Positions 123 through 64,000 of a DNA stretch of 64,000 nucleotides are shown here, one piece after another. Numbering within the stretch: position 1 is the first letter of the stretch; every line of letters starts with the position of its first letter. Location: positions 372,001 to 436,000 of the forward strand of contig OZ025661.1 in NCBI GenBank assembly GCA_964019335.1, in the 5' to 3' direction. Both the position numbers and the translations under genes were made by a program. Below the pieces are notes generated by a model. It was not told where the DNA came from. It saw only the letters and a list, made by a program, of their open reading frames with translations, and ran no database searches. The stretch comes from Diplonema japonicum (lineage: Eukaryota; Protista; Euglenozoa: Diplonemea).

Positions 123-540
123 AACTGTGATTTTTTTTTTTTTTTTTTTTTTTTTAGAGGAACAATAAAATAATATAATATTACTCAAAACGACAGAGCG
201 AGGGGGGGGGGGGGGGGGGGAGCAAGCTGGAGTTACCCTTTTTTTTTCCTCTTTCCTTTTTTGTTTGATACGACTTTCTTTAAAAAAAGAAATCAAACAA
301 AAGGAGGAAGAAAACAAAAGAGGGAGAGGGGGGGGAACAAAAAAAAAACCCCCCCGCAACTGATTTCTTTTTCTTCTTCTTTTTTTTGCTCTCCCCTGAT
401 TTTTCCTTGTAAAAAAAAAAAAAAGAATGAGAGGGGGGAAAAAATTAACTGCGAAAAAAAAGGGGCTAAAAAAAAAAAAAAAAAGGGGGGCTTTGATTGC
501 AACACTAAGTGGCGTTAAGCGTGCAACGAAGCATGAACCA

Positions 541-626
541 TCTACTTGATTACAGGGGGCGCACCTCGGTCAACACGCGAACACCATCTGATGTACTTCT
601 TATATTTTCATGTTATCCTCACCACC
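541..626 (-). mobile_element. Internally deleted copy of the HDV-ribozyme SINE-like element (5' end joined to 3' stem-loop; ribozyme core lost)
   Basis: Shares tctacttgattacagggggcgcacc and ggtcaaca...atctgatgt..ttcttatattttcatgttatcc.caccacc with 2531-2841 but lacks the middle. Confidence 0.75.
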
Positions 627-705: not shown

Positions 706-2510
706 GGGTCGATTTCAAACCCCCCCCCAAAAAAATGAGGCCAATTGACACTTTCGTTGCATCTTTGGGCATGCCGCCCCCTTTAAAACTCAAATTAACA
801 TGCAAACTCCCAGAGCAAAAGCCGCATGCCCTAAAAGGGAGGGGGTATGGTCAGTACTAGGTATCTCTGCGACTCCTCCAACTGCTGATCTCTTCAGGCA
901 AGAAGCACCCTTCATTGGCTCCCACTAGCGTCCCAGCAGGTTTGGAGAGTACTTTTCCCGACCACGGTCTCCGCATTCGCTCTGTGGACAAGGCTATGGA
1001 GAGCCAGGTCCTTAGTGGCTCCTGCGCGGTTAAAAAAAATTCTCCATATTTCCCGGCCCATATTAGGAAAGAACCCGGGTCAGAAATTGCTCAAGAGTGC
1101 TATTTTGACCTATGAAAAATTCAGTTTTAGGGTCAAAATCGGGTTTTAGTGGTTTTGGTAAAGTCAGAGAGTATGCTTTCAATAGCAAGAAATAGCGGAA
1201 CTCACTACTAGAAGGTGGCTGAAATGATGTTGGAAGTGGAAACCTTCATTTCCTAGTCTTCTGCGGCTGAGATGTGCTGCTGCTGAGTGGGCGACCTCGT
1301 TTCTTTTTCATACTATTAGGCCTTCTTTCGCATTTTGGGGGGGTTTTAAGAGGCTCATTCGTAGGTGTACTTGGTGCTTTGGGCTTGTCATGGGGTGTCA
1401 AGTATTTTTGTAATTTGGTCACTATTCTTTCTCGTTTTTAAAGTCCGGGAAGGCTATCAGGAACGTCCTCATACTCATCACAAGATACATAGACTGGGGG
1501 CCTTTTCTCTGCCCTGTCTGCATCGAGTTCTTTGATGATGTACTTTAGTTCCTTCTAGCTCGTGGATGCGAGCAAATACACCCTCCGTGTGCTCCTGAGC
1601 TCATATGCACCTGTAAAATCCGGAAACTCAAGAATCTTCTTTTTGTACGGGCCAAAGACATCAGTAACTACATGCACGGCGCACCGTATCGTATTGGTGA
1701 TGTTAGCTATTTGTTCCACAGTTTTAATTGTTGTGGAACGAGGCACCCAAAGCCAAACACGAGAGAGCACACCAAAGTGGCTGTCCCTGCTGTTTTTGCC
1801 GTGTTTCTCCCCCAGAAACCACAGGGAAAACGTCCGATCAGGATAAACAAAACGAAGACCAAAAGAACAAGTAGCAAAATTCCTTTGCACGAAAGTGACG
1901 CCCACCGTCAGTCCAGAGTATCCACTCCATTTTTTTCTTTACTACTGTGGAACACGTTTTTTCCAACAGTAAGGCCAGCTGCCCTTATTTCGTCATGTGT
2001 GATGTGGTCAAGCCTCATGCCTCTGACCAATTGGCGCCGTGTGGTGTCTTGTTGGCTACTAAACCAACCAGAAAATGATAGCAGAAGTGCCTCTAGAAGT
2101 TCCCCTTTACACACTACGTCACAAACTAGTGCAGCACAGTCGTTGCCACTGAGCTTCTCAAGAACCTCTTGGCGGGTGTCCTGATCGCCGTGGTGTTCCC
2201 ATTTACCCTTTCTCGGTCCGAATACCATTTTTGTTTACCCCTAGCTTCTCAACAGCAAGTTTAAAAGCATCCGTTTTTGTCACCCCCTCTTTACTGAATT
2301 TGTGCAAAGTGAAAAAACCCATTTTTGCCCCTAGGACTGAATTTTCTGGGTACCAGTAACACTCACTTTCCCATTTTCTGGGGTGTTTTCTTTCCAAACC
2401 TGGGCCGGGAAAGTTGTAGAATTTTTTTTCTTTGGGAAAAAGTACTTAGAGAAATATTGAAAGTGTCAATTGGCCTCATTTTTGGGAGGGGGGGGTTTTG
2501 AAACGATGCC
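706..2510 (-). mobile_element. Degenerate Sola2-like DNA transposon with ~50-bp TIRs, inserted in (TA)n
   Basis: TIRs 706-755 and 2459-2510 (core AAAATGAGGCCAATTGACACTTTC), GGG left terminus, ATAT flanks; broken minus-strand ORFs (1555-1905, 1908-2228, 2203-2397) include FLGEKHGKNSRDSHFG, an HGK..D motif of Sola2-type DDD transposases. Confidence 0.7.
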
Positions 2511-2530
2511 ATATATATATATATATATAT

Positions 2531-2840
2531 ATGAGTTAAAGGAGGCCGGTGTTGGCGGCGCCCTGCACAAGAACTGTCTACTTGATTACAGGGGGCGCAC
2601 CGCGGCCGAGTTGTAGCGTTCCGCGTCGTGTCCTTAATGCGTGCGGTGTGCAGATCAACCCCAGCCGGGACGTCCCGGGTAACCAAGATTCTGCGCTCGT
2701 GCAGTTTGCTGCCTGTTCGTCACCCTGAGCATCTGCGTTACGTTCTTCCACTCGGGCGCTACCGGTGATGACCGACGAGGAGGTCAACAGCGAACAACAC
2801 ATCTGATGTTTTTCTTATATTTTCATGTTATCCCCACCAC

Positions 2841-2841
<1 letters not shown>
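2531..2841 (-). mobile_element. Full-length SINE-like retroposon copy A (5' HDV-like ribozyme, 3' stem-loop, (AT)n tail)
   Basis: Near-identical to 5298-5617 (about 2 substitutions and a 9-bp indel); 5'-truncated relatives at 9334 and 54978 fix the minus orientation. Confidence 0.85.
2708..2841 (-). ncRNA. HDV-like self-cleaving ribozyme (copy A)
   Basis: Manual fold of the minus strand: P1 GGUGGUG/CAUCACC, P2 GCUGUUG/CA(G)GCAGC, P3 ACC/GGU, L3 UCCUCGUC, P1.1 GG, P4 CGCCC-GAGUG/UGCUC-A-GGGUG, J4/2 ACGAA (catalytic-C equivalent at 2719), J1/2 hairpin insertion. Confidence 0.8.
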
Positions 2842-2888
<47 letters not shown>

Positions 2889-2933
2889 AGAATACAATTA
2901 TTTTTGAGTTGTGTGTGTGTAAAACTTTCAACG

Positions 2934-2980
<47 letters not shown>

Positions 2981-2981
2981 A

Positions 2982-3938
2982 TCACGTCATTGTAACATTT
3001 TCATGAGGGTGGATAACTGTTTTTTTTACAAGCACGCACCCGTCATAACCACATCCAGTCACCTTGCTGTGGTAGGCCATCGCTTGGTCGCCAGGTAAAC
3101 GGCCAAGGTAAGGATAGCCCCGCGCACGCATTTCGTACTCAAGGTGCGCATACATACACCCGAAAAAGGGGAAGGAGAGGATATAGGCGAGCTCTTCAAG
3201 CTCCGGGAAATTACAACAGAATTCCCCAGGAATTCTACAGATTGCTGATGCAGAGAGGATACAGGAATCCAGACAGGTGTCTTCCAGACCATAGTGTGCT
3301 TGGACCATCCAGCGATGGGCGTGAAGGGCGAAACACGGAAATAAAAACACTTCGAGACACATACAGCAGTCCGCATTCTCTTTTACAAGGGAGCTACATA
3401 GAAGCGTCCCCTTCACACCGCAGAGGCCCTGACAACATTCGTAATTTTGGTCGTTTTTCAACAGAAGTTTTTGTCGTTGCATGCACAGGGCCACGCTTGC
3501 AATGGGGCCCAAGTACCCTGCAAGACAGTGGCCGAATGTGTTGCAGTCCTTCATCCACACGAAGAAGACGTCGCCGTGGTGGCTTGTCGCCCACAGCCCT
3601 GTCCCCTTGGAGTGTTTTGTGGTCTTGTTTTCTCTTGTGGGGAACATTGCGTGTGAGACTTTCCCTTTGCTTGCCATTGGGTACCAGAAGTCCTTTTTGG
3701 TGCCGACCGGCCAGTCCTTGCCTGGTGCATCCCAGGGGCCTGTTGCTCCTTTCCCGGCTTCTTGTAGATACTGGGCTGCGTTTCCGGCTGCGGAGCTCAC
3801 CGCAGCCGTTGCTTTGTCTTTTAAGCCCCCGAGGAAACCCTTCTTGTCTTTTTTGTCGCCGCCTGCGTTGTCCTCTCCCCCTCCGCCCCCCCCTGGCACG
3901 ACATTCGATGTCGAACCAAATTCCACCATTTGGGACAT
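2982..3938 (-). CDS. PLAC8/cornifelin-like cysteine-rich protein (318 aa)
   Basis: ATG after A-tract; Cys-rich C-terminal half with CCMCLEVFLFPCFALHAHRWMVQAHYGLEDTCLD, PLAC8-like pattern. Confidence 0.7.
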   Translation of the reverse strand: MSQMVEFGSTSNVVPGGGGGGEDNAGGDKKDKKGFLGGLKDKATAAVSSAAGNAAQYLQEAGKGATGPWDAPGKDWPVGTKKDFWYPMASKGKVSHAMFPTRENKTTKHSKGTGLWATSHHGDVFFVWMKDCNTFGHCLAGYLGPIASVALCMQRQKLLLKNDQNYECCQGLCGVKGTLLCSSLVKENADCCMCLEVFLFPCFALHAHRWMVQAHYGLEDTCLDSCILSASAICRIPGEFCCNFPELEELAYILSFPFFGCMYAHLEYEMRARGYPYLGRLPGDQAMAYHSKVTGCGYDGCVLVKKTVIHPHENVTMT

Positions 3939-4381: not shown

Positions 4382-5297
4382 TGTAAATCGAAAATGGCTG
4401 GGGTGAGTGGTTTCGACATCTACGGTATCCTAGGAAAAAGAAGAAAGAAGGAAAAAAAGGAAAAAGAAAAAAAAAAAAAAAAAATAGGTGAGAAAAGAGA
4501 GAAACATATCGAACACACACCTCATACACCCTTTGTTTTGTTTTGTTTCGCCGTCCTTTTTTTTTTCTTTTAAAAAAAACAAAGGAGAAGAACAGGGGAT
4601 GGGGTACAAAGAAAGAAAAAAAAATCATAAGAACTTCAAGAAAAAAAGGGGGGGGGGGAACCGCATCCAAGCGAAAAATAGCCAAAACAGGAAACGCACT
4701 TGAAGGAGGTCTCTATCTAGGAACCCCTGCAGGGCAGGTGGCCAGCAGCAAGCAAACCAGGCAGACATGAGACCGTGTGACCCCCATGGTATTCTCATCT
4801 GCCTCAATGTCCTTTGCTGAAGGAAAAACAAAAACAAAAAAGAGACACTTATATACCTTCCTCTCAAACAGAAAGAAAGAAAAGTAAAAGGCAAGCCCTT
4901 CCCTTGTCCCCCCCCCCCCCCCCCCCCCCGCCCATGAATTGCTGAATTGCCAGAAAGGAGGGGGGGAAAAAAAAGAAGAATGAGGGGATAAATAGGAAAG
5001 CTATGTTACAAAGTCAGGACCAAATATAAAAAAAGAAGAGAAAAAAAAAAGAAAACAACACGACACACAAAAAAAAAAGGTTTGTTTCCATTTTTCTTCT
5101 TCTTCTTCTTCTTCTTCTTTTTTTTTTTTTTTTTTTTTCCCGAAAGAAATTGTGGAGGTGGTTTAAAATGCGTCTCACCTTTTTTTTTTTTTTTTTTTTT
5201 TTTTCCCCTTCTCCTTGCGGTCTCTCACACACCCGTCATCCATTATCAAAAGGTTAGAAAGGTAGCATAACGGTGGTAATGAAAAAAAAATATATAT

Positions 5298-5617
5298 ATG
5301 AGTTAAAGGAGGCCGGTGTTGGCGGCGCCCTGCACAAGAACTGTCTACTTGATTACAGGGGGCGCACCGCGGCCGAGTTGTAGCTTCTTCTGCGTTCCGC
5401 GTCGTGTCCTTAATGCGTGCGGTGTGCAGATCAACCCCAGCCGGGGCGTCCCGGGTAACCAAGATTCTGCGCTCGTGCAGTTTGCTGCCTGTTCGTCACC
5501 CTGAGCATCTGCGTTACGTTCTTCCACTCGGGCGCTACCGGTGATGACCGACGAGGAGGTCAACAGCGAACAACACATCTGATGTTTTTCTTATATTTTC
5601 ATGCTATCCCCACCACC
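5298..5617 (-). mobile_element. Full-length SINE-like retroposon copy B, starting 32 nt after the ATG4 stop codon
   Basis: Near-identical to 2531-2841; (AT)n tail at 5291-5299. Confidence 0.85.
5484..5617 (-). ncRNA. HDV-like self-cleaving ribozyme (copy B)
   Basis: Same core as copy A; the only change in the ribozyme is A>G in the J1/2 hairpin (keeps G-U pairing); catalytic-C equivalent at 5495. Confidence 0.8.
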
Positions 5618-5649
5618 TGGAAAAAAAAAAAAAAAAAAAAAAAAAAAAT

Positions 5650-6564
5650 TCAATCCCAGTCCTCCACATCCATGTCCAAGTCCGAATCAAACCCCGCAGC
5701 AGGTTTCCCCTTCGCGAACAAAGGCCACTTCGAATTCCCGAGCCTAGTAGTCACCAGCCTCTCAATGAGGTCGTTCGCCTCGTCTTTTGTCTTGACCAGA
5801 AAAGTAAGCAAACACGAAGTGTCGAGAGACGACACAGATTCTAAACTATTCGATGCGATGCACCCGAGAGATGAGATAGATGTGAAGGCAGGCTGCGTTG
5901 TGTGAGGGTCGAGACAGAGGATAGATGAAGTTGAGTGGCTGTGTCCAATGAGGTAGAGAGCATGGTTTGGCGTTCCACCACAAAGGCCTGTTGAAAATGG
6001 TGCTGCGAGACAGTTGTGAAGAAACGATTCGTTTTCAGGATTTATCCGATCGAGCCCCAACATGAATGGGATAAGCACCAAAACAGGTGTGGGGGAAGAA
6101 TTCTCAAAATGTGAAAGAATCGCCTGGTCGTCTATGATTTGATCCAGCACAACCTCAACCTTCGCTTCTGTGAAAAGATCTCGTACTATAAAAGCTAGGG
6201 TGGATGGGCCCAACCAGGTTCCGAAGGGTTTGCCGTACTTTTCACCAACTTCCGCAATTTGGTGCACAGAGTACTTTGCTTCTCTTCTGTCCATGAAATA
6301 TTCGAGGCATCCTTTGCCTTTTCCTAAAGACTGAAGGACGCGCATTAGGAGCATCTGGCCTGTTCGGTGCATGCAGCCCCAACCCATATCTGTTGTTCCT
6401 CCATTCATCATGCCCTCTAATCCGGTTCTATAGCTGAACCACGTGAAGTTGTTTTCAATAATCCTGGCGGCCACGTTGCTTGCTTCTTGTTGAACTATAC
6501 TGCTCCCCGAGACCACCGTGCCCCCCGCTAGTACTATTTCACCTTTGGCAAGAATTCGTTCCAT
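5650..6564 (-). CDS. ATG4: Autophagy cysteine protease ATG4 (peptidase C54), 304 aa
   Basis: WFSYR, TDMGWGCMHRTGQMLL (catalytic Cys), GGTPNHALYLIG, LDPH (Asp/His), SLDTS. Confidence 0.93.
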   Translation of the reverse strand: MERILAKGEIVLAGGTVVSGSSIVQQEASNVAARIIENNFTWFSYRTGLEGMMNGGTTDMGWGCMHRTGQMLLMRVLQSLGKGKGCLEYFMDRREAKYSVHQIAEVGEKYGKPFGTWLGPSTLAFIVRDLFTEAKVEVVLDQIIDDQAILSHFENSSPTPVLVLIPFMLGLDRINPENESFLHNCLAAPFSTGLCGGTPNHALYLIGHSHSTSSILCLDPHTTQPAFTSISSLGCIASNSLESVSSLDTSCLLTFLVKTKDEANDLIERLVTTRLGNSKWPLFAKGKPAAGFDSDLDMDVEDWD

Positions 6565-26007: not shown

Positions 26008-26302
26008 AATAATAATAAAAAAAAAAGCGACAAACTGCACTGAGATGACATAAAAACACTATTACCCCCCCTTTTTTTTTCTTTTCCTTCTTTCTTTATA
26101 CACCGCAAAATCCTTTTAAAATTGTCCCCCAGGTTTGCTTTTCGCCTACCATGCGCTGTAATATAGCCAATAGAAAAAAAAAAAAAAAAAGAAAAAAAAA
26201 AAAAAGAGACACTGCGGTGTGTGGCAGGACGCCTCAAAAAAAAAGATCGGCTGAAAATGGCACTGGCTGTTATTTTTGGTTCTTTTTTTTTTTTTTTTTT
26301 TT

Positions 26303-27640: not shown

Positions 27641-27770
27641 CCTATTTCTAAGAGTGAAAAAAAAAGGAGAAAAAAAAAAAAAGGTGAAACTTGCTGACTT
27701 GGAGTTGTCTAATTTACACCTATCGCATAAGTCGGGAAAGATCAGAAAACAAAAAAAGAAGAAAAAAAAA

Positions 27771-27807
27771 GACATTTAAGGGCACCTGCGGTATGCAGCA
27801 GGACGCC
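27771..27807 (+). repeat. Short dispersed repeat GACATTTAAGGG(C/T)ACCTGCGGT..G..GCAGGACGCC (also 30654-30690, 26212-26233; partial inverse 45356-45365)
   Basis: Direct sequence matches, flanked by A-tracts. Confidence 0.6.
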
Positions 27808-28587
27808 AAAAAAAAGGGGGGGGGGAGGAAAGAAGGAGACTCATCACTGACTGATAAAGTCCTCCAGTTCCAACGAGGGTTTGTTCTTTAAAAAAAAAAA
27901 GAAACACACAAAAATCGCCCTGTTTTTTCCATTGAAGATCATTAAAATAATAATAATAATTACAATAAGATTCACAATAAACAAAATAGTTTAGAAGAAA
28001 AAAAAAAGAAGAAGAAAAAGAAGATCGATAATTAATAAAATTCAATAGTTTCATTTTTTTTGGGGGGGGGAGGTGGAGTGAGATAGAAAGAAAAAAAAGG
28101 ACGAAGCGGAAACCTATTTTCCACTATAAAAAAACTTTTTGAAGGGAGCAAAAAAAAAAAAAGGAGGGGAGAGAGGGAGAGGGAGAAAGGGCTTATTTTG
28201 TATAAAAAAGATTTTTTTAAATAGAACTAAATGGATGGGGGTAGCTTTTTCTTTTTCTTTTTTTTTTCTTTTTTTCGTTGTCTTCATTTACATCCTCCTA
28301 ATTAAAGAAAGTCAATAGGAGGTGGAGAGGGGGGTGGGGGCAATGATCCCTCTCCCTCTTTTTTTTTTTCTTTCCTTTTTTTTTCTTTTGCTTATTCCCT
28401 ACTCCATTGTTGCCACTTCATCGGGTGGGGGGGGGGGGAAATAATTTTTATTTATTGTTGGTTGGCTCTCGATTTCCTTTCCTTTTGAAGGGGTTTCCAC
28501 TATTATTATTGAAGACCCGAAAGAAGAAAGAAAAAAAAAATAATAGAAGGGGAGCAATCGGCAAATCAGTAATGATTTTTGGCTATT

Positions 28588-30614: not shown

Positions 30615-30655
<41 letters not shown>

Positions 30656-30992
30656 CATTTAAGGGTACCTGCGGTGTGTGGCAGGACGCCATAAATAAAA
30701 TAAAAAGGTGGGGGGGAATAGGGGAGAGCTTAACATGTAAGGTATTTTTTTTTCTTCTTTCTAATTAGGCTTTCTTCTCTCTTTCTCTTCTGTTTCTTCT
30801 TGTTATATTCGTCCCTTTCAATTATTTGTTCTACAAAAGAATCTTTTTTTTTTATTATACATCTGGGGAATAAGGACGGGGGAGCTGAACAATACAAAAT
30901 TTGCGAAAAGTGTTTTCACGAGTATTTTTTGTTCTGCCCCTTCGTTGGTTTTTTTCTTCTTCTTCTTCTTCTTTTTTTTCTTTTTTTTTTTC

Positions 30993-45592: not shown

Positions 45593-47593
45593 TCACTTTT
45601 TCGTAGGAATCTGCTGTGGCGGCCACAGCGGCTCTGGCTGCGAAAGATGGTCTTGGTTATGCTGGTGGTGGTGGTGGTATTGCTGATGCTGTGGCGGCCA
45701 TATCGATGGCTGCGAAAGATGGTCTTGGTTATGCTGGTGGTGGTGGTGGTGGTGGTATTGCTGATGCTGTGGCGGCCATATCGATGGCTGCGAAAGATGG
45801 TCTTGGTTATGCTGGTGATGCGGGATCTGGTGGTATTGCTGATGCTGTGGCTGGTGTGGATAATGGTGATGGTGATGGTAGTGCTGCTGCATCTCCTGTG
45901 CCTTCTTGCATGCTGCGAAAATGCCTTCCTTGATATCGACAATGATGCCTTTGTGCCCTGCGATGCAGGAGGCGTACCTTGGCGGAGCATCACCAACAAA
46001 CGGCTGCAGCGGTGTGATGACGGACTGCGGGCTGGGGTCGTAGAATGTGGCAATGGAGTACCGGTCGCCGTCGTGCTTGTTGATCACACGGTGCATGGTC
46101 GCTGGGAGTACTCCGTTCGTCAGCTTCTCCAACACAAACCCGGTGTTCAGCACGAACGACCCGGGCACCACGGGGATCGCCACCCACTCCCCATCACGCA
46201 TCACCTCCAACCCCTCATTGTCCTGTGTGATAAGCGTGAGTGCACCGTAGTCAACATGGCTGCCTGCACCGATCTCGTTTTTTCCCGGAGTTGCTTCCTT
46301 CTGAGGGGAGTATCTCAACACCCTGTTTATGACGAGAGGCTTGTCGAAGCAGTCCAACAGTGTATTGTCTTCCAACCCAAGCCCTTTGCTGATCTCTTCC
46401 AGCACACTTTCTGCTAACTTCCTCACCTGGTAAAGATACTCTTCGCATGACACGCGGAGCCCAGGGTATATATCCTCTGGGGGCCATCTGTTGAGTCCTA
46501 ACTGTGCTTCGTGTGTTGAGAGGCTGTGCGCTCCGTAGTCGAACGACTCCTTCAGGTCGCCGCCCATGAAGGGGTTCAGGTTCTCCATTCGCATTGGGGT
46601 GTATCCTCTGGCGCACTTCATAATCGGCTGGTGGTGTTCCATCCGCGGCCTCGCCATGACGGCAGCCTTGTAGTGTGCCTGAGTGCTGAAGAAGTTCTTC
46701 GCAAGTGACATCGTTTCCTGAATCTGGCTGCGCTTCACACCGTGGTTCGTGATGTACACGAACCCGTCGCTTTTCAATGCAGCGATCAGTTCGGCAGCAC
46801 GGCCTTCGTTTTTGCTCCAGTCGATGGTGTGCAGAGAGAGGCCCTTCGCACCTGCAGAGGAAGTGGCAGGCTTCGTGATCATGTCGCCTGACCCGCCCTG
46901 GTCCAGCCAGTGCGAGTGTGACGGCAGCACAGTGATGCTACTAGTGTTCATCGGTGAGCATGCGATGATCGATGTCGTTTCAGCTCTTTTGGAGGTGTTG
47001 ACCATGTATTTGAAGTTCTTCACAGCGGTGTTCTTAAGAGTCACTTCGACGTCTGCCTGCGTCCCCTGCGATGGGGTGGACACAGGCAGCTGCGATCTTT
47101 GTACGATTTCCCATGGTGAAGAGGTCACTTTCATGTCCGGCTTTCCTGGCAGCTTGAAGGTGACCGACTGGATGAAGTCCTTTTCGGGTACCACAAACAG
47201 CGTCCAAATGACATCGTCGTCTGCTTTGAATGCAGTGTTCCCGATTGTTATCCACACTTCGTCCTTCCCTTTGGGGAGGTACTGGACGGCGGTGAAGTTA
47301 GGATCTATCAGGAACTGCGCAAAGACCTCGAGGGGGATCCCGTCCGCAAGCGCTTTCAGGTGTTCGAGTTTTGCAAGCTTTGGACCCTTAAGTTTGAATT
47401 CTGTCCAGCCAGCGTTTACTAGAGTACCGCAGAAGAGGTGGGCCTCGTCAGCGGTGACCGTGGTACGCTCACCGACTACCTTAAGCCACGCGTGTTCGAA
47501 GGCGTCTAGACATGTGGAATCAGGTGTTCCCGCAGTCGAGAATTGGCCGAGTATGACCCTCGCCTTCTTCATGCATTCAGTAAAGCAGGTCAT
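45593..47593 (-). CDS. 2OG-Fe(II) oxygenase (IPNS/DIOX family) with YEATS-like N-terminal domain and His/Gln-rich tail (666 aa)
   Basis: GFVYITNHGV, RGY, DLKESFD, HVDYGALTL (HxD), ATMHRV, RYSIATF; ATG at 47593. Confidence 0.85.
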   Translation of the reverse strand: MTCFTECMKKARVILGQFSTAGTPDSTCLDAFEHAWLKVVGERTTVTADEAHLFCGTLVNAGWTEFKLKGPKLAKLEHLKALADGIPLEVFAQFLIDPNFTAVQYLPKGKDEVWITIGNTAFKADDDVIWTLFVVPEKDFIQSVTFKLPGKPDMKVTSSPWEIVQRSQLPVSTPSQGTQADVEVTLKNTAVKNFKYMVNTSKRAETTSIIACSPMNTSSITVLPSHSHWLDQGGSGDMITKPATSSAGAKGLSLHTIDWSKNEGRAAELIAALKSDGFVYITNHGVKRSQIQETMSLAKNFFSTQAHYKAAVMARPRMEHHQPIMKCARGYTPMRMENLNPFMGGDLKESFDYGAHSLSTHEAQLGLNRWPPEDIYPGLRVSCEEYLYQVRKLAESVLEEISKGLGLEDNTLLDCFDKPLVINRVLRYSPQKEATPGKNEIGAGSHVDYGALTLITQDNEGLEVMRDGEWVAIPVVPGSFVLNTGFVLEKLTNGVLPATMHRVINKHDGDRYSIATFYDPSPQSVITPLQPFVGDAPPRYASCIAGHKGIIVDIKEGIFAACKKAQEMQQHYHHHHHYPHQPQHQQYHQIPHHQHNQDHLSQPSIWPPQHQQYHHHHHHQHNQDHLSQPSIWPPQHQQYHHHHQHNQDHLSQPEPLWPPQQIPTKK
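45610..45890 (-). repeat. Coding tandem repeat (HNQDHLSQPSIWPPQHQQYHn) x3
   Basis: Direct inspection of DNA and translation. Confidence 0.9.
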
Positions 47594-63475: not shown

Positions 63476-64000
63476 TTAGTACCTATCCCTATCATCTCTC
63501 TTCTCCCTCCTATCGTAAGATCTGTCCTCTCTGCTGTCCCTCCTGTAATCACGTTCCCTTCTGTCGTCTCTCCTGTCTCTGTCATCTCTTCTTCTGTCGG
63601 TGTCCCTTTCATCCCTTCTCCTGTCCATGCCCCTTTCATCCCTTCTCCTGTCGGTGTCCCTTTCATCCCTTCTTCTATCCATGTCTCTTTCATCCCTTCT
63701 CCTGCCCATGTCTCTTTCATCCCTTCTGTCTCTTCCCCTGCTGTCTCTCCTCCTGCTAGATGTTGACGGGTATGGTGCGTAGTCAGATCTGAGTGGGTGT
63801 TTTCATCAAAATTATTATTTTTTATGGTACCCTCTGTTCTGTCTCCTGTATTCCCTGTCCCTGCTGTCTCTTCTTTCGGTCCTGTCTCGACTGCTTCTCC
63901 TCCTTGGTGCGTGTCCTGATCTCGGTTCCACCGTGACTTGTCGGTCCCCCAGATACTTCCCGTCGAGTACCTCAATGGCGCCCTTTGCGCAGTTTTCGTC
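63476..64000 (-). CDS. 3' part of an RRM + Arg/Asp-rich (SR-like) RNA-binding protein; intron 63789-63830
   Basis: Own translation: AKGAIEVLDGKYLGDRQVTVE (RRM end); a 42-nt GT-AG intron joins it to 9-aa RRRDERD(M/T)D repeats ending RDRY*. Confidence 0.8.

Follow-up and report, generated by a model that had tools for sequence, protein, structure and literature searches.

A short retroposon family headed by a predicted HDV-like ribozyme fold, and its partner LINEs, in the diplonemid Diplonema japonicum

The stretch analysed here (the window) comprises 64,000 nucleotides of Diplonema japonicum DNA (Euglenozoa: Diplonemea; assembly GCA_964019335.1, contig OZ025661.1, positions 372,001 to 436,000 of the forward strand). 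Its minus strand carries all of the long open reading frames (ORFs) and all three copies of a non-coding repeat resembling a short interspersed nuclear element (SINE), namely two full copies of a family called here SINE-1 and an internally deleted derivative of a sister family, SINE-2. An earlier note, made from the letters of the window, had proposed that the copy starting at 2841 opens with a complete ribozyme of the hepatitis delta virus (HDV) type. The fold it described is present, and the same architecture was found with compensating helix sequences at the heads of five families of long interspersed nuclear elements (LINE-A to LINE-E) of the same genome, in agreement with its assignment as HDV-like. 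Features of the window are listed in Table 1; minus-strand number n in the ribozyme corresponds to position 2842-n.

The minus strand from 2841 to 2708 reads GGUGGUG-(43 nt)-GCUGUUG-ACC-UCCUCGUC-GGU-CAUCACC-GG-(42-nt hairpin region)-CGAA-CAGGCAGC. Every helix that had been drawn in it was recovered at the same coordinates and in the canonical HDV order, which in this head and in the five LINE heads is P1-(J1/2)-P2-P3-L3-P3′-P1′-(J1/4)-P4-(J4/2)-P2′ (P, paired; J, joining; L, loop). The extra hairpin proposed within J1/2 was also obtained when the 43-nt insert was folded alone with RNAfold. The further copy reported at 5484-5617 is there, with one base differing, in the J1/2 hairpin.

Table 1 Features of the short elements and their flanks in the window.
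Feature	Position	Strand	Remarks
SINE-1 full copy: ribozyme head, ~140-nt body, 3′ stem-loop, tail ...CUCAU(AU)n	2511..2841	-	30-copy alignment: sharp 5′ edge at G2841, 3′ end at (TA)n
HDV-like ribozyme fold (predicted), 134 nt	2708..2841	-	predicted cleavage 5′ of G2841
P1 5′ strand, GGUGGUG	2835..2841	-	G1 = 2841; partner 2764-2770; 7 bp, one G.U
J1/2 insert, 43 nt, own hairpin (GGAUAACAU/AUGUGUUGUUC region)	2792..2834	-	RNAfold of isolated piece: 9-bp stem, -4.7 kcal/mol
P2 5′ strand, GCUGUUG	2785..2791	-	7 bp with 2708-2715, one G bulged
P3, ACC 2784-2782 / GGU 2773-2771, around L3 UCCUCGUC 2781-2774	2771..2784	-	3 bp
P1 3′ strand, CAUCACC	2764..2770	-	partner of 2835-2841
J1/4, GG	2762..2763	-	proposed P1.1 partner of L3 CC; GG and UCC invariant in all six ribozyme types
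P4 hairpin, CGCCCGAG/CUC(A)GGGUG	2720..2761	-	RNAfold of isolated piece: -11.0 kcal/mol
J4/2, A-CGAA	2716..2719	-	candidate catalytic C at 2719; C at the equivalent place in all six types
P2 3′ strand, CA(G)GCAGC	2708..2715	-	partner of 2785-2791
3′ recognition module (putative), AGGG-C-GCCG-CCAACAC-CGGC-C-UCCU then UUAACUCAU	2531..2564	-	architecture and terminal CCUUUAACUCAUAUA as at LINE-A and LINE-B 3′ ends
Upstream flank, outside the element	2842..2889	-	long T-run, then AAA
Second SINE-1 full copy, ribozyme 5484-5617	5291..5617	-	G1 32 nt past stop codon (5650-5652) of Peptidase_C54 (ATG4-like) ORF
Internally deleted SINE-2 derivative	485..626	-	first 59 nt of head fused to SINE-2 tail; ribozyme core gone

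G1 had been taken to coincide with the boundary of the element, and among 30 aligned genomic copies the likeness does begin exactly at G1; it stops at ...CCUCCUUUAACUCAU(AU)n. The length, given as ~310 bp, is ~308 bp plus a (TA)n tail, and 331 bp for the copy at 2841→2511, which is without 9 nt (GCAGAAGAA) that most copies have. A genome search with the non-coding element returned ~1600 first-look candidates for SINE-1, and all 40 of those scored were 93-100% identical to the query. The 23-nt core ACCTCCTCGTCGGTCATCACCGG has 486 exact occurrences in the genome, against 0 for a reversed control. The sister family, SINE-2 (~970 first-look candidates), has the head and body of SINE-1 and differs in its last 50-60 nt. 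Between the two consensus sequences there are 4 differences in the head, all in hairpin loops and, outside the P4 loop, confined to that of the J1/2 hairpin, and 8 in the body, while the tail is replaced. Deletion derivatives of SINE-2 of the 626→485 type were found in two copies only in the genome. The short retroposon family that the earlier note had inferred is thereby supported in copy number, in orientation and in its 5′ end, with two tail variants, and the sequence comparisons support a multi-copy retroposon family headed by an HDV-like fold. A SINE in the strict sense is ruled out, as no head derived from tRNA, 5S or 7SL RNA was found: ARAGORN detects no tRNA in 2300-3000, and no Rfam family for a head of this RNA polymerase III (Pol III) type matched in the window or, at E ≤ 10, in 2400-3000. 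The element is therefore only SINE-like.

The heads of LINE-A to LINE-E begin right after a T-run and 0-7 nt, and fold like the SINE head (Table 2). That of LINE-A reads GGGGCU...CUGGGGA-ACC-UCCACGU-GGU-GGCCCU-GGG-hairpin-GCAAAC-UCCCCAG, with a G1.U wobble, and is preceded by a T-run and a few A. LINE-C, LINE-D and LINE-E were found in the genome by covariance models built from LINE heads. P1, P2 and P4 of the SINE all differ from those of the LINEs, yet are complementary; P3 is ACC/GGU in five types and GCC/GGC in LINE-E. All six types have UCC in L3, GG after P1′ and a C in J4/2, without variation; J4/2 itself is CGAA, CAAA or CAGA (with the preceding G, GCAAA, GCGAA or GCAGA), and the J1/2 inserts measure 41-47 nt. 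In a model-made alignment of LINE-A, LINE-B and LINE-C, 97.5% of cells pair, but shifting the partners against each other lowers the figure to 40-62%. In nine pairs both sides differ, and 3 of these belong to P2, a helix absent from the model that made the alignment.

Table 2 Helices of the six predicted ribozyme types (5′ strand/3′ strand).
Type	P1	P2	P3	P4
SINE	GGUGGUG/CAUCACC	GCUGUUG/CA(G)GCAGC	ACC/GGU	CGCCCGAG/CUC(A)GGGUG
LINE-A	GGGGCU/GGCCCU	CUGGGGA/UCCCCAG	ACC/GGU	UCCCCUCC/GGGGGGGA
LINE-B	GGGGCU/GGCCCU	CUGGGG/CCCCAG	ACC/GGU	UCUUCUCC/GGAGGAGA
LINE-C	GGGGGC/GCCCCU	CCCGGCGC/GCGCCGGG	ACC/GGU	ACCGAGC/GCUCGGU
LINE-D	GGGGGC/GCCUCU	CCCGGCCC/GGGCCGGG	ACC/GGU	GCCGA/UCGGC
LINE-E	GGGGGUU/AGCCCCU	CGGUGGG/CCCACCG	GCC/GGC	UGUCA/UGGCA

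At four loci (L066, L074, L097 and L101) a LINE-A/B head gives way to other sequence behind P1′ or before that point. They are internally deleted derivatives without P4, J4/2 and P2′, in which cleavage is presumably lost.

The search for an autonomous LINE with the 3′ stem-loop of the short element, which the earlier note had suggested, led to LINE-A and LINE-B, both of which end in the stem-loop and CCUUUAACUCAUAUA. The LINE-A 3′ end is ...GUCUCACAAAGACUUCCUUUAACUCAUAUA followed by a T-run, with the terminal CCUUUAACUCAUAUA and a two-tier stem-loop as in SINE-1, and that of LINE-B is identical to it. LINE-C has the same 3′ module, but its inner stem covaries; the variants of this stem are GCCG/CGGC, GUCU/AGAC and GUUCC/GGAAC. 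By the shared 3′ end, the short element appears to be a non-autonomous partner of these LINEs. Coding capacity was checked for one ribozyme-headed family, LINE-A, which has a single ORF of ~2035 amino acids in which Exo_endo_phos spans residues 633-869 and RVT_1 spans 1231-1443. A EukProt transcriptome contains a protein 100% identical to it over the searched region, and the nearest named relative is from Diplonema papillatum (47% identity). Matches in marine metatranscriptomes, the spliced leader and the gene arrays on one strand are likewise what a diplonemid host would show. The genome contains at least 625 RVT_1 candidates, spread over several LINE families. The SINE-1 ribozyme head was not copied from any of the LINE heads found in the genome, and none of the LINEs found was identified as the owner of the SINE-2 tail.

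The opposite orientation, a plus-strand SINE ending in ...CCACC and poly(A), was rejected because in the ribozyme direction the ORFs of the partner LINEs, which have the same flanks, run, the SINE tail equals the LINE 3′ ends, and spliced leaders lie upstream. Two LINE families with two ORFs and poly(A) tails (L061 and L062) and a leader-capped LINE family (L088/L089) were considered as relatives and set aside as unrelated to the SINE. These elements (L061, 1700-7350; L062, 1800-7620; L088/L089) have two ORFs or one long ORF and A-rich or poly(A) tails; their 5′ ends are an A-run or spliced-leader-like. The elements as a whole are unrelated to the ribozyme-headed clade.

The elements occupy a characteristic genomic setting. 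At 48 of the 63 element starts a run of six or more T occurs no further than 8 nt upstream, and the 0-7 variable bases between it and G1, mostly (C)A(n), are not inherited; base -1 is A at 51 of the 63. At 22 of 23 loci the SINE is oriented as the longest flanking open frame. Among the first 100 matches, SINE strands lie in blocks along contigs, with 9 switches in 76 neighbouring pairs, always from minus to plus. On those of contigs C1-C24 that have both SINE strands there is one switch each, from minus at low coordinates to plus, a pattern that points to a single divergent strand-switch on each chromosome, from which transcription runs outward. A euglenozoan spliced leader is fused at G1/G2 in seven of the SINE copies and in some of the LINE copies, and in one LINE-B copy (L064) the leader and ~105 nt of foreign sequence stand ahead of an uncleaved LINE-B head. 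It follows from these copies that read-through, trans-spliced host-type RNAs serve as templates, presumably when cleavage fails. The leader, of a 39-nt type ending in ...CCAACGATTCTAAAGCTACAGTTTCTGTACTTTATTG, is fused to the first G of the element in retrocopies at L082, L083, L100, L064 (~755-881) and L088 (~750-787).

Both full copies in the window lie in sense just past stop codons (5617-5652 and 2841-2984): the copy at 5617 stands 32 nt past the Peptidase_C54/ATG4-like ORF and that at 2841 stands 140 nt past an unnamed ORF. Elements are often found in head-to-tail stacks, directly behind the tail and T-run of another element (L081, L074, L087); the combinations seen are a LINE-A/B-type tail then SINE-2, a SINE-2-like tail then an internally diverged LINE-A-type head, and SINE-2 then SINE-1.

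Taken together, the data make it probable that the short element is a promoter-less, non-autonomous retroposon that is freed by HDV-like self-cleavage at G1 and copied by LINEs. Lying behind T-tracts in the direction of the host gene arrays, it would be transcribed within host read-through RNA. Its first 134 nt are predicted from their structure to fold into an HDV-like double pseudoknot that would cut the RNA just 5′ of G1. To judge from the predicted structure, the sharpness of the boundary and the variability of the junction bases, an RNA beginning exactly with the first element base would be released. The shared tail suggests that LINEs then copy this RNA into new T-tracts by target-primed reverse transcription, and the 3′ stem-loop with the UCCUUUAACUCAUAUA tail, common to two LINE families, would serve reverse transcription by LINE-A/B. 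At least five LINE families may use the same device with helix sequences of their own.

A search descriptor was assembled from a P3 of 3 bp, an L3 made of UCC and 4-5 further nt, a P1 of 6-7 bp with G as its first base, the GG, a hairpin for P4, C[AG]AA and a P2 no shorter than 6 bp. It matched 45 times in 0.65 Mb (both strands; the window and the fetched loci) against once in 40 Mb of first-order Markov random sequence, and among the matches listed every one falls on the opening base of an element. At that background rate ~3 matches would be expected in the 62.5-Mb genome, so helices of this kind can be drawn now and then without meaning. A chance resemblance is nevertheless scarcely credible here, since the match coincides exactly with the opening base of the short element, as it does in five unrelated LINE heads whose helices compensate; six different element heads matched in this way are beyond the chance expectation.

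Several points weigh against a working ribozyme at the head of the short element. The search with HDV-like models that the earlier note had advised returned no Rfam HDV-type match, either at the gathering score in the whole window or at E ≤ 10 in 2400-3000. The best Rfam score among the six heads was that of the drz-Agam-1 model (RF01787, Anopheles) on LINE-D, which it aligns in the assigned register, but at 18 bits, below the gathering score of 37; the SINE itself has no match. The long J1/2 and the pseudoknot are a likely reason for these scores falling below threshold. The LINE-head covariance models score the SINE head at 5-8.5 bits (E 0.17-0.9), and the comparison of SINE and LINE heads was made by hand and script, not by a joint covariance model; the assignment of the SINE head therefore rests on architecture and not on detectable homology. 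P1.1, L3 and the catalytic C are constant throughout, so that covariation is silent on them. The SINE head also has G1-C where the LINEs have G1.U, a bulge in each of P2 and P4 and an L3 of 8 nt beginning with UCC; its self-cleavage, as modelled, is not guaranteed. These departures, together with the lack of a significant covariance-model or Rfam score, are what a decayed relic would display, one that no longer cleaves while the ends of SINE RNA are made otherwise. We think this very unlikely, given the 486 exact cores, the sharp boundary and the contrast between four head changes, all in loops, and the eight changes and replaced tail of the rest of the element. The confinement of head changes to loops fits selection on the head in source copies.

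It is also unlikely that the fold, real and conserved, does another job, such as translation start or removal of a capped leader, while the 5′ end is set by an internal promoter at G1 (as by Pr77 in L1Tc) or by trans-splicing at a poly-pyrimidine tract and A|G. The frequent A at -1 behind the T-run, which with G(+1) resembles a splice acceptor, would agree with the latter, as would the leader joined at G1/G2 in seven SINE and several LINE copies; the position of the LINE start codon inside J1/2 is a further point in favour of such a reading. Were trans-splicing the template maker, though, most copies should carry the 39-nt leader, and the count is 7 leader-capped copies to 486 exact cores. As to an internal promoter, the six heads have no shared sequence in the first 50 nt, yet all keep the ribozyme architecture; the bases ahead of G1, moreover, are not inherited. 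There is some chance, albeit a small one, that ribozyme and trans-splicing are coupled. The T-run and A|G could be a leader acceptor, the last G of the leader restoring G1 and the ribozyme re-cutting the capped leader, or the host mRNA could be cut 30-140 nt past the stop codon (5617 and 2841 are examples of such a position). On this view the elements would be not only parasites but also self-cleaving switches of the 3′ ends or cap status of mRNAs in a host with a polycistronic genome. Cleavage freeing a promoter-less element from a host transcript remains the reading that we prefer.

The arrangement can be compared with known systems. In R2 elements (Drosophila type) whose self-cleavage falls exactly on the 5′ end, the 5′ junctions are variable and non-propagated; R2 shows P1-P1′ spacers of 23 to >700 nt (PMC3774820), and short non-coding SIDEs derived from R2 retain the ribozyme together with the 3′ end that binds protein (PMC3774820, PMC3414825). 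Like R2, the diplonemid elements contain the ribozyme, read here as a fold from sequence, wholly within themselves, with the predicted cut at their first base in the host co-transcript, and they have variable, non-inherited 5′ junction bases and a long P1-P1′ spacer. Unlike R2, which has a restriction-like endonuclease and one target in ribosomal DNA, the diplonemid LINE has an endonuclease of the apurinic/apyrimidinic (AP) type, and the elements land behind T-tracts genome-wide and would be co-transcribed with protein-gene arrays. In the trypanosomatids, L1Tc/NARTc, ingi/RIME and SIDER comprise AP-endonuclease LINEs and short partners with HDV-like ribozyme heads, often in 3′ untranslated regions (UTRs) (PMC3185411, PMC4035085). 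The host phylum, Euglenozoa, and the pairing of a ribozyme-headed LINE with a short partner are common to both. Pr77 ribozymes start with C1 and differ from those of HDV and R2 in P1 and P1.1 (PMC4035085); they are ~77-96 nt long and double as an internal promoter, and a conserved signature of 77-79 nt at the 5′ end marks the family. By contrast, G is the first base of the diplonemid heads, which carry UCC...GG and C(G/A)AA like HDV and R2 and have a J1/2 of 41-47 nt; the elements have no poly(A) tail. Judged by the published description (PMC4035085) and by the earlier note, which did not recognise the ingi/SIDER 79-bp signature in it, the short element does not look like a member of the Pr77/L1TcRz type. 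The core consensus of drz-Agam-1, ACCUCCuCGuGGU, is nearly that of the SINE, ACCUCCUCGUCGGU.

Members of drz-Agam-2 (RF01788) lie at the 5′ ends of RTE-type elements and have J1/2 inserts. The genomic HDV ribozyme has a 7-bp P1, a 3-bp P3, an L3 of UCCUCGCU, GG for P1.1, C-G-A-A before the P2 3′ strand and a J1/2 of 2 nt. The SINE head resembles it in helix order, in the lengths of P1 and P3, in GG and CGAA, and in L3 (UCCUCGUC); it differs in its 43-nt J1/2, in having G1-C for G1.U and in belonging to a retroposon and not to a circular RNA replicon. LINE/SINE pairs of the 'stringent' kind, such as UnaL2/UnaSINE1 of eel, share a 3′ stem-loop. The short element likewise has the terminal stem-loop of its partner LINE and a short repeat tail instead of poly(A), but its head is a ribozyme fold and not a Pol III (tRNA/5S/7SL) promoter.

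HDV-like ribozymes are the established means by which promoter-less retroelements without long terminal repeats leave host transcripts, and diplonemids are among the most abundant marine protists. The mechanism is thus already known in kind (R2 and its SIDEs, RTE-type elements, L1Tc/NARTc/SIDER). For the family itself, a literature search returned no description, nor any paper joining 'HDV-like ribozyme' with diplonemids, and ribozymes go unmentioned in the D. japonicum genome note (PMC13598402) and in the D. papillatum genome paper. If the models hold, the known device would extend to diplonemids as a whole clade, with at least five LINE families and two high-copy short partners. The six sequence-distinct predicted ribozymes with long J1/2 inserts form a natural set for biochemistry. 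As the elements lie in sense within polycistronic gene arrays, sometimes a few dozen bases past a stop codon, they may shape the ends of host mRNAs; cleavage at 5617 or 2841, if it occurs, would sever the host 3′ UTR.

A ~40-nt repeat (GGCGTCCTGYCACATACCGCAGGTACCCTTAAATGTC and its complement) lies beside T/A-runs at 26163-26241, 27737-27815 and 30620-30698 of the window and at loci L003, L024, L026 and L065, in several cases immediately ahead of a SINE copy. Tandem repeats, of 78-nt and of 27-nt period, are present at 45648-45881 and 63547-63754 of the window, in or near long minus-strand ORFs, and 4432-4498 is an A/G-rich low-complexity stretch.
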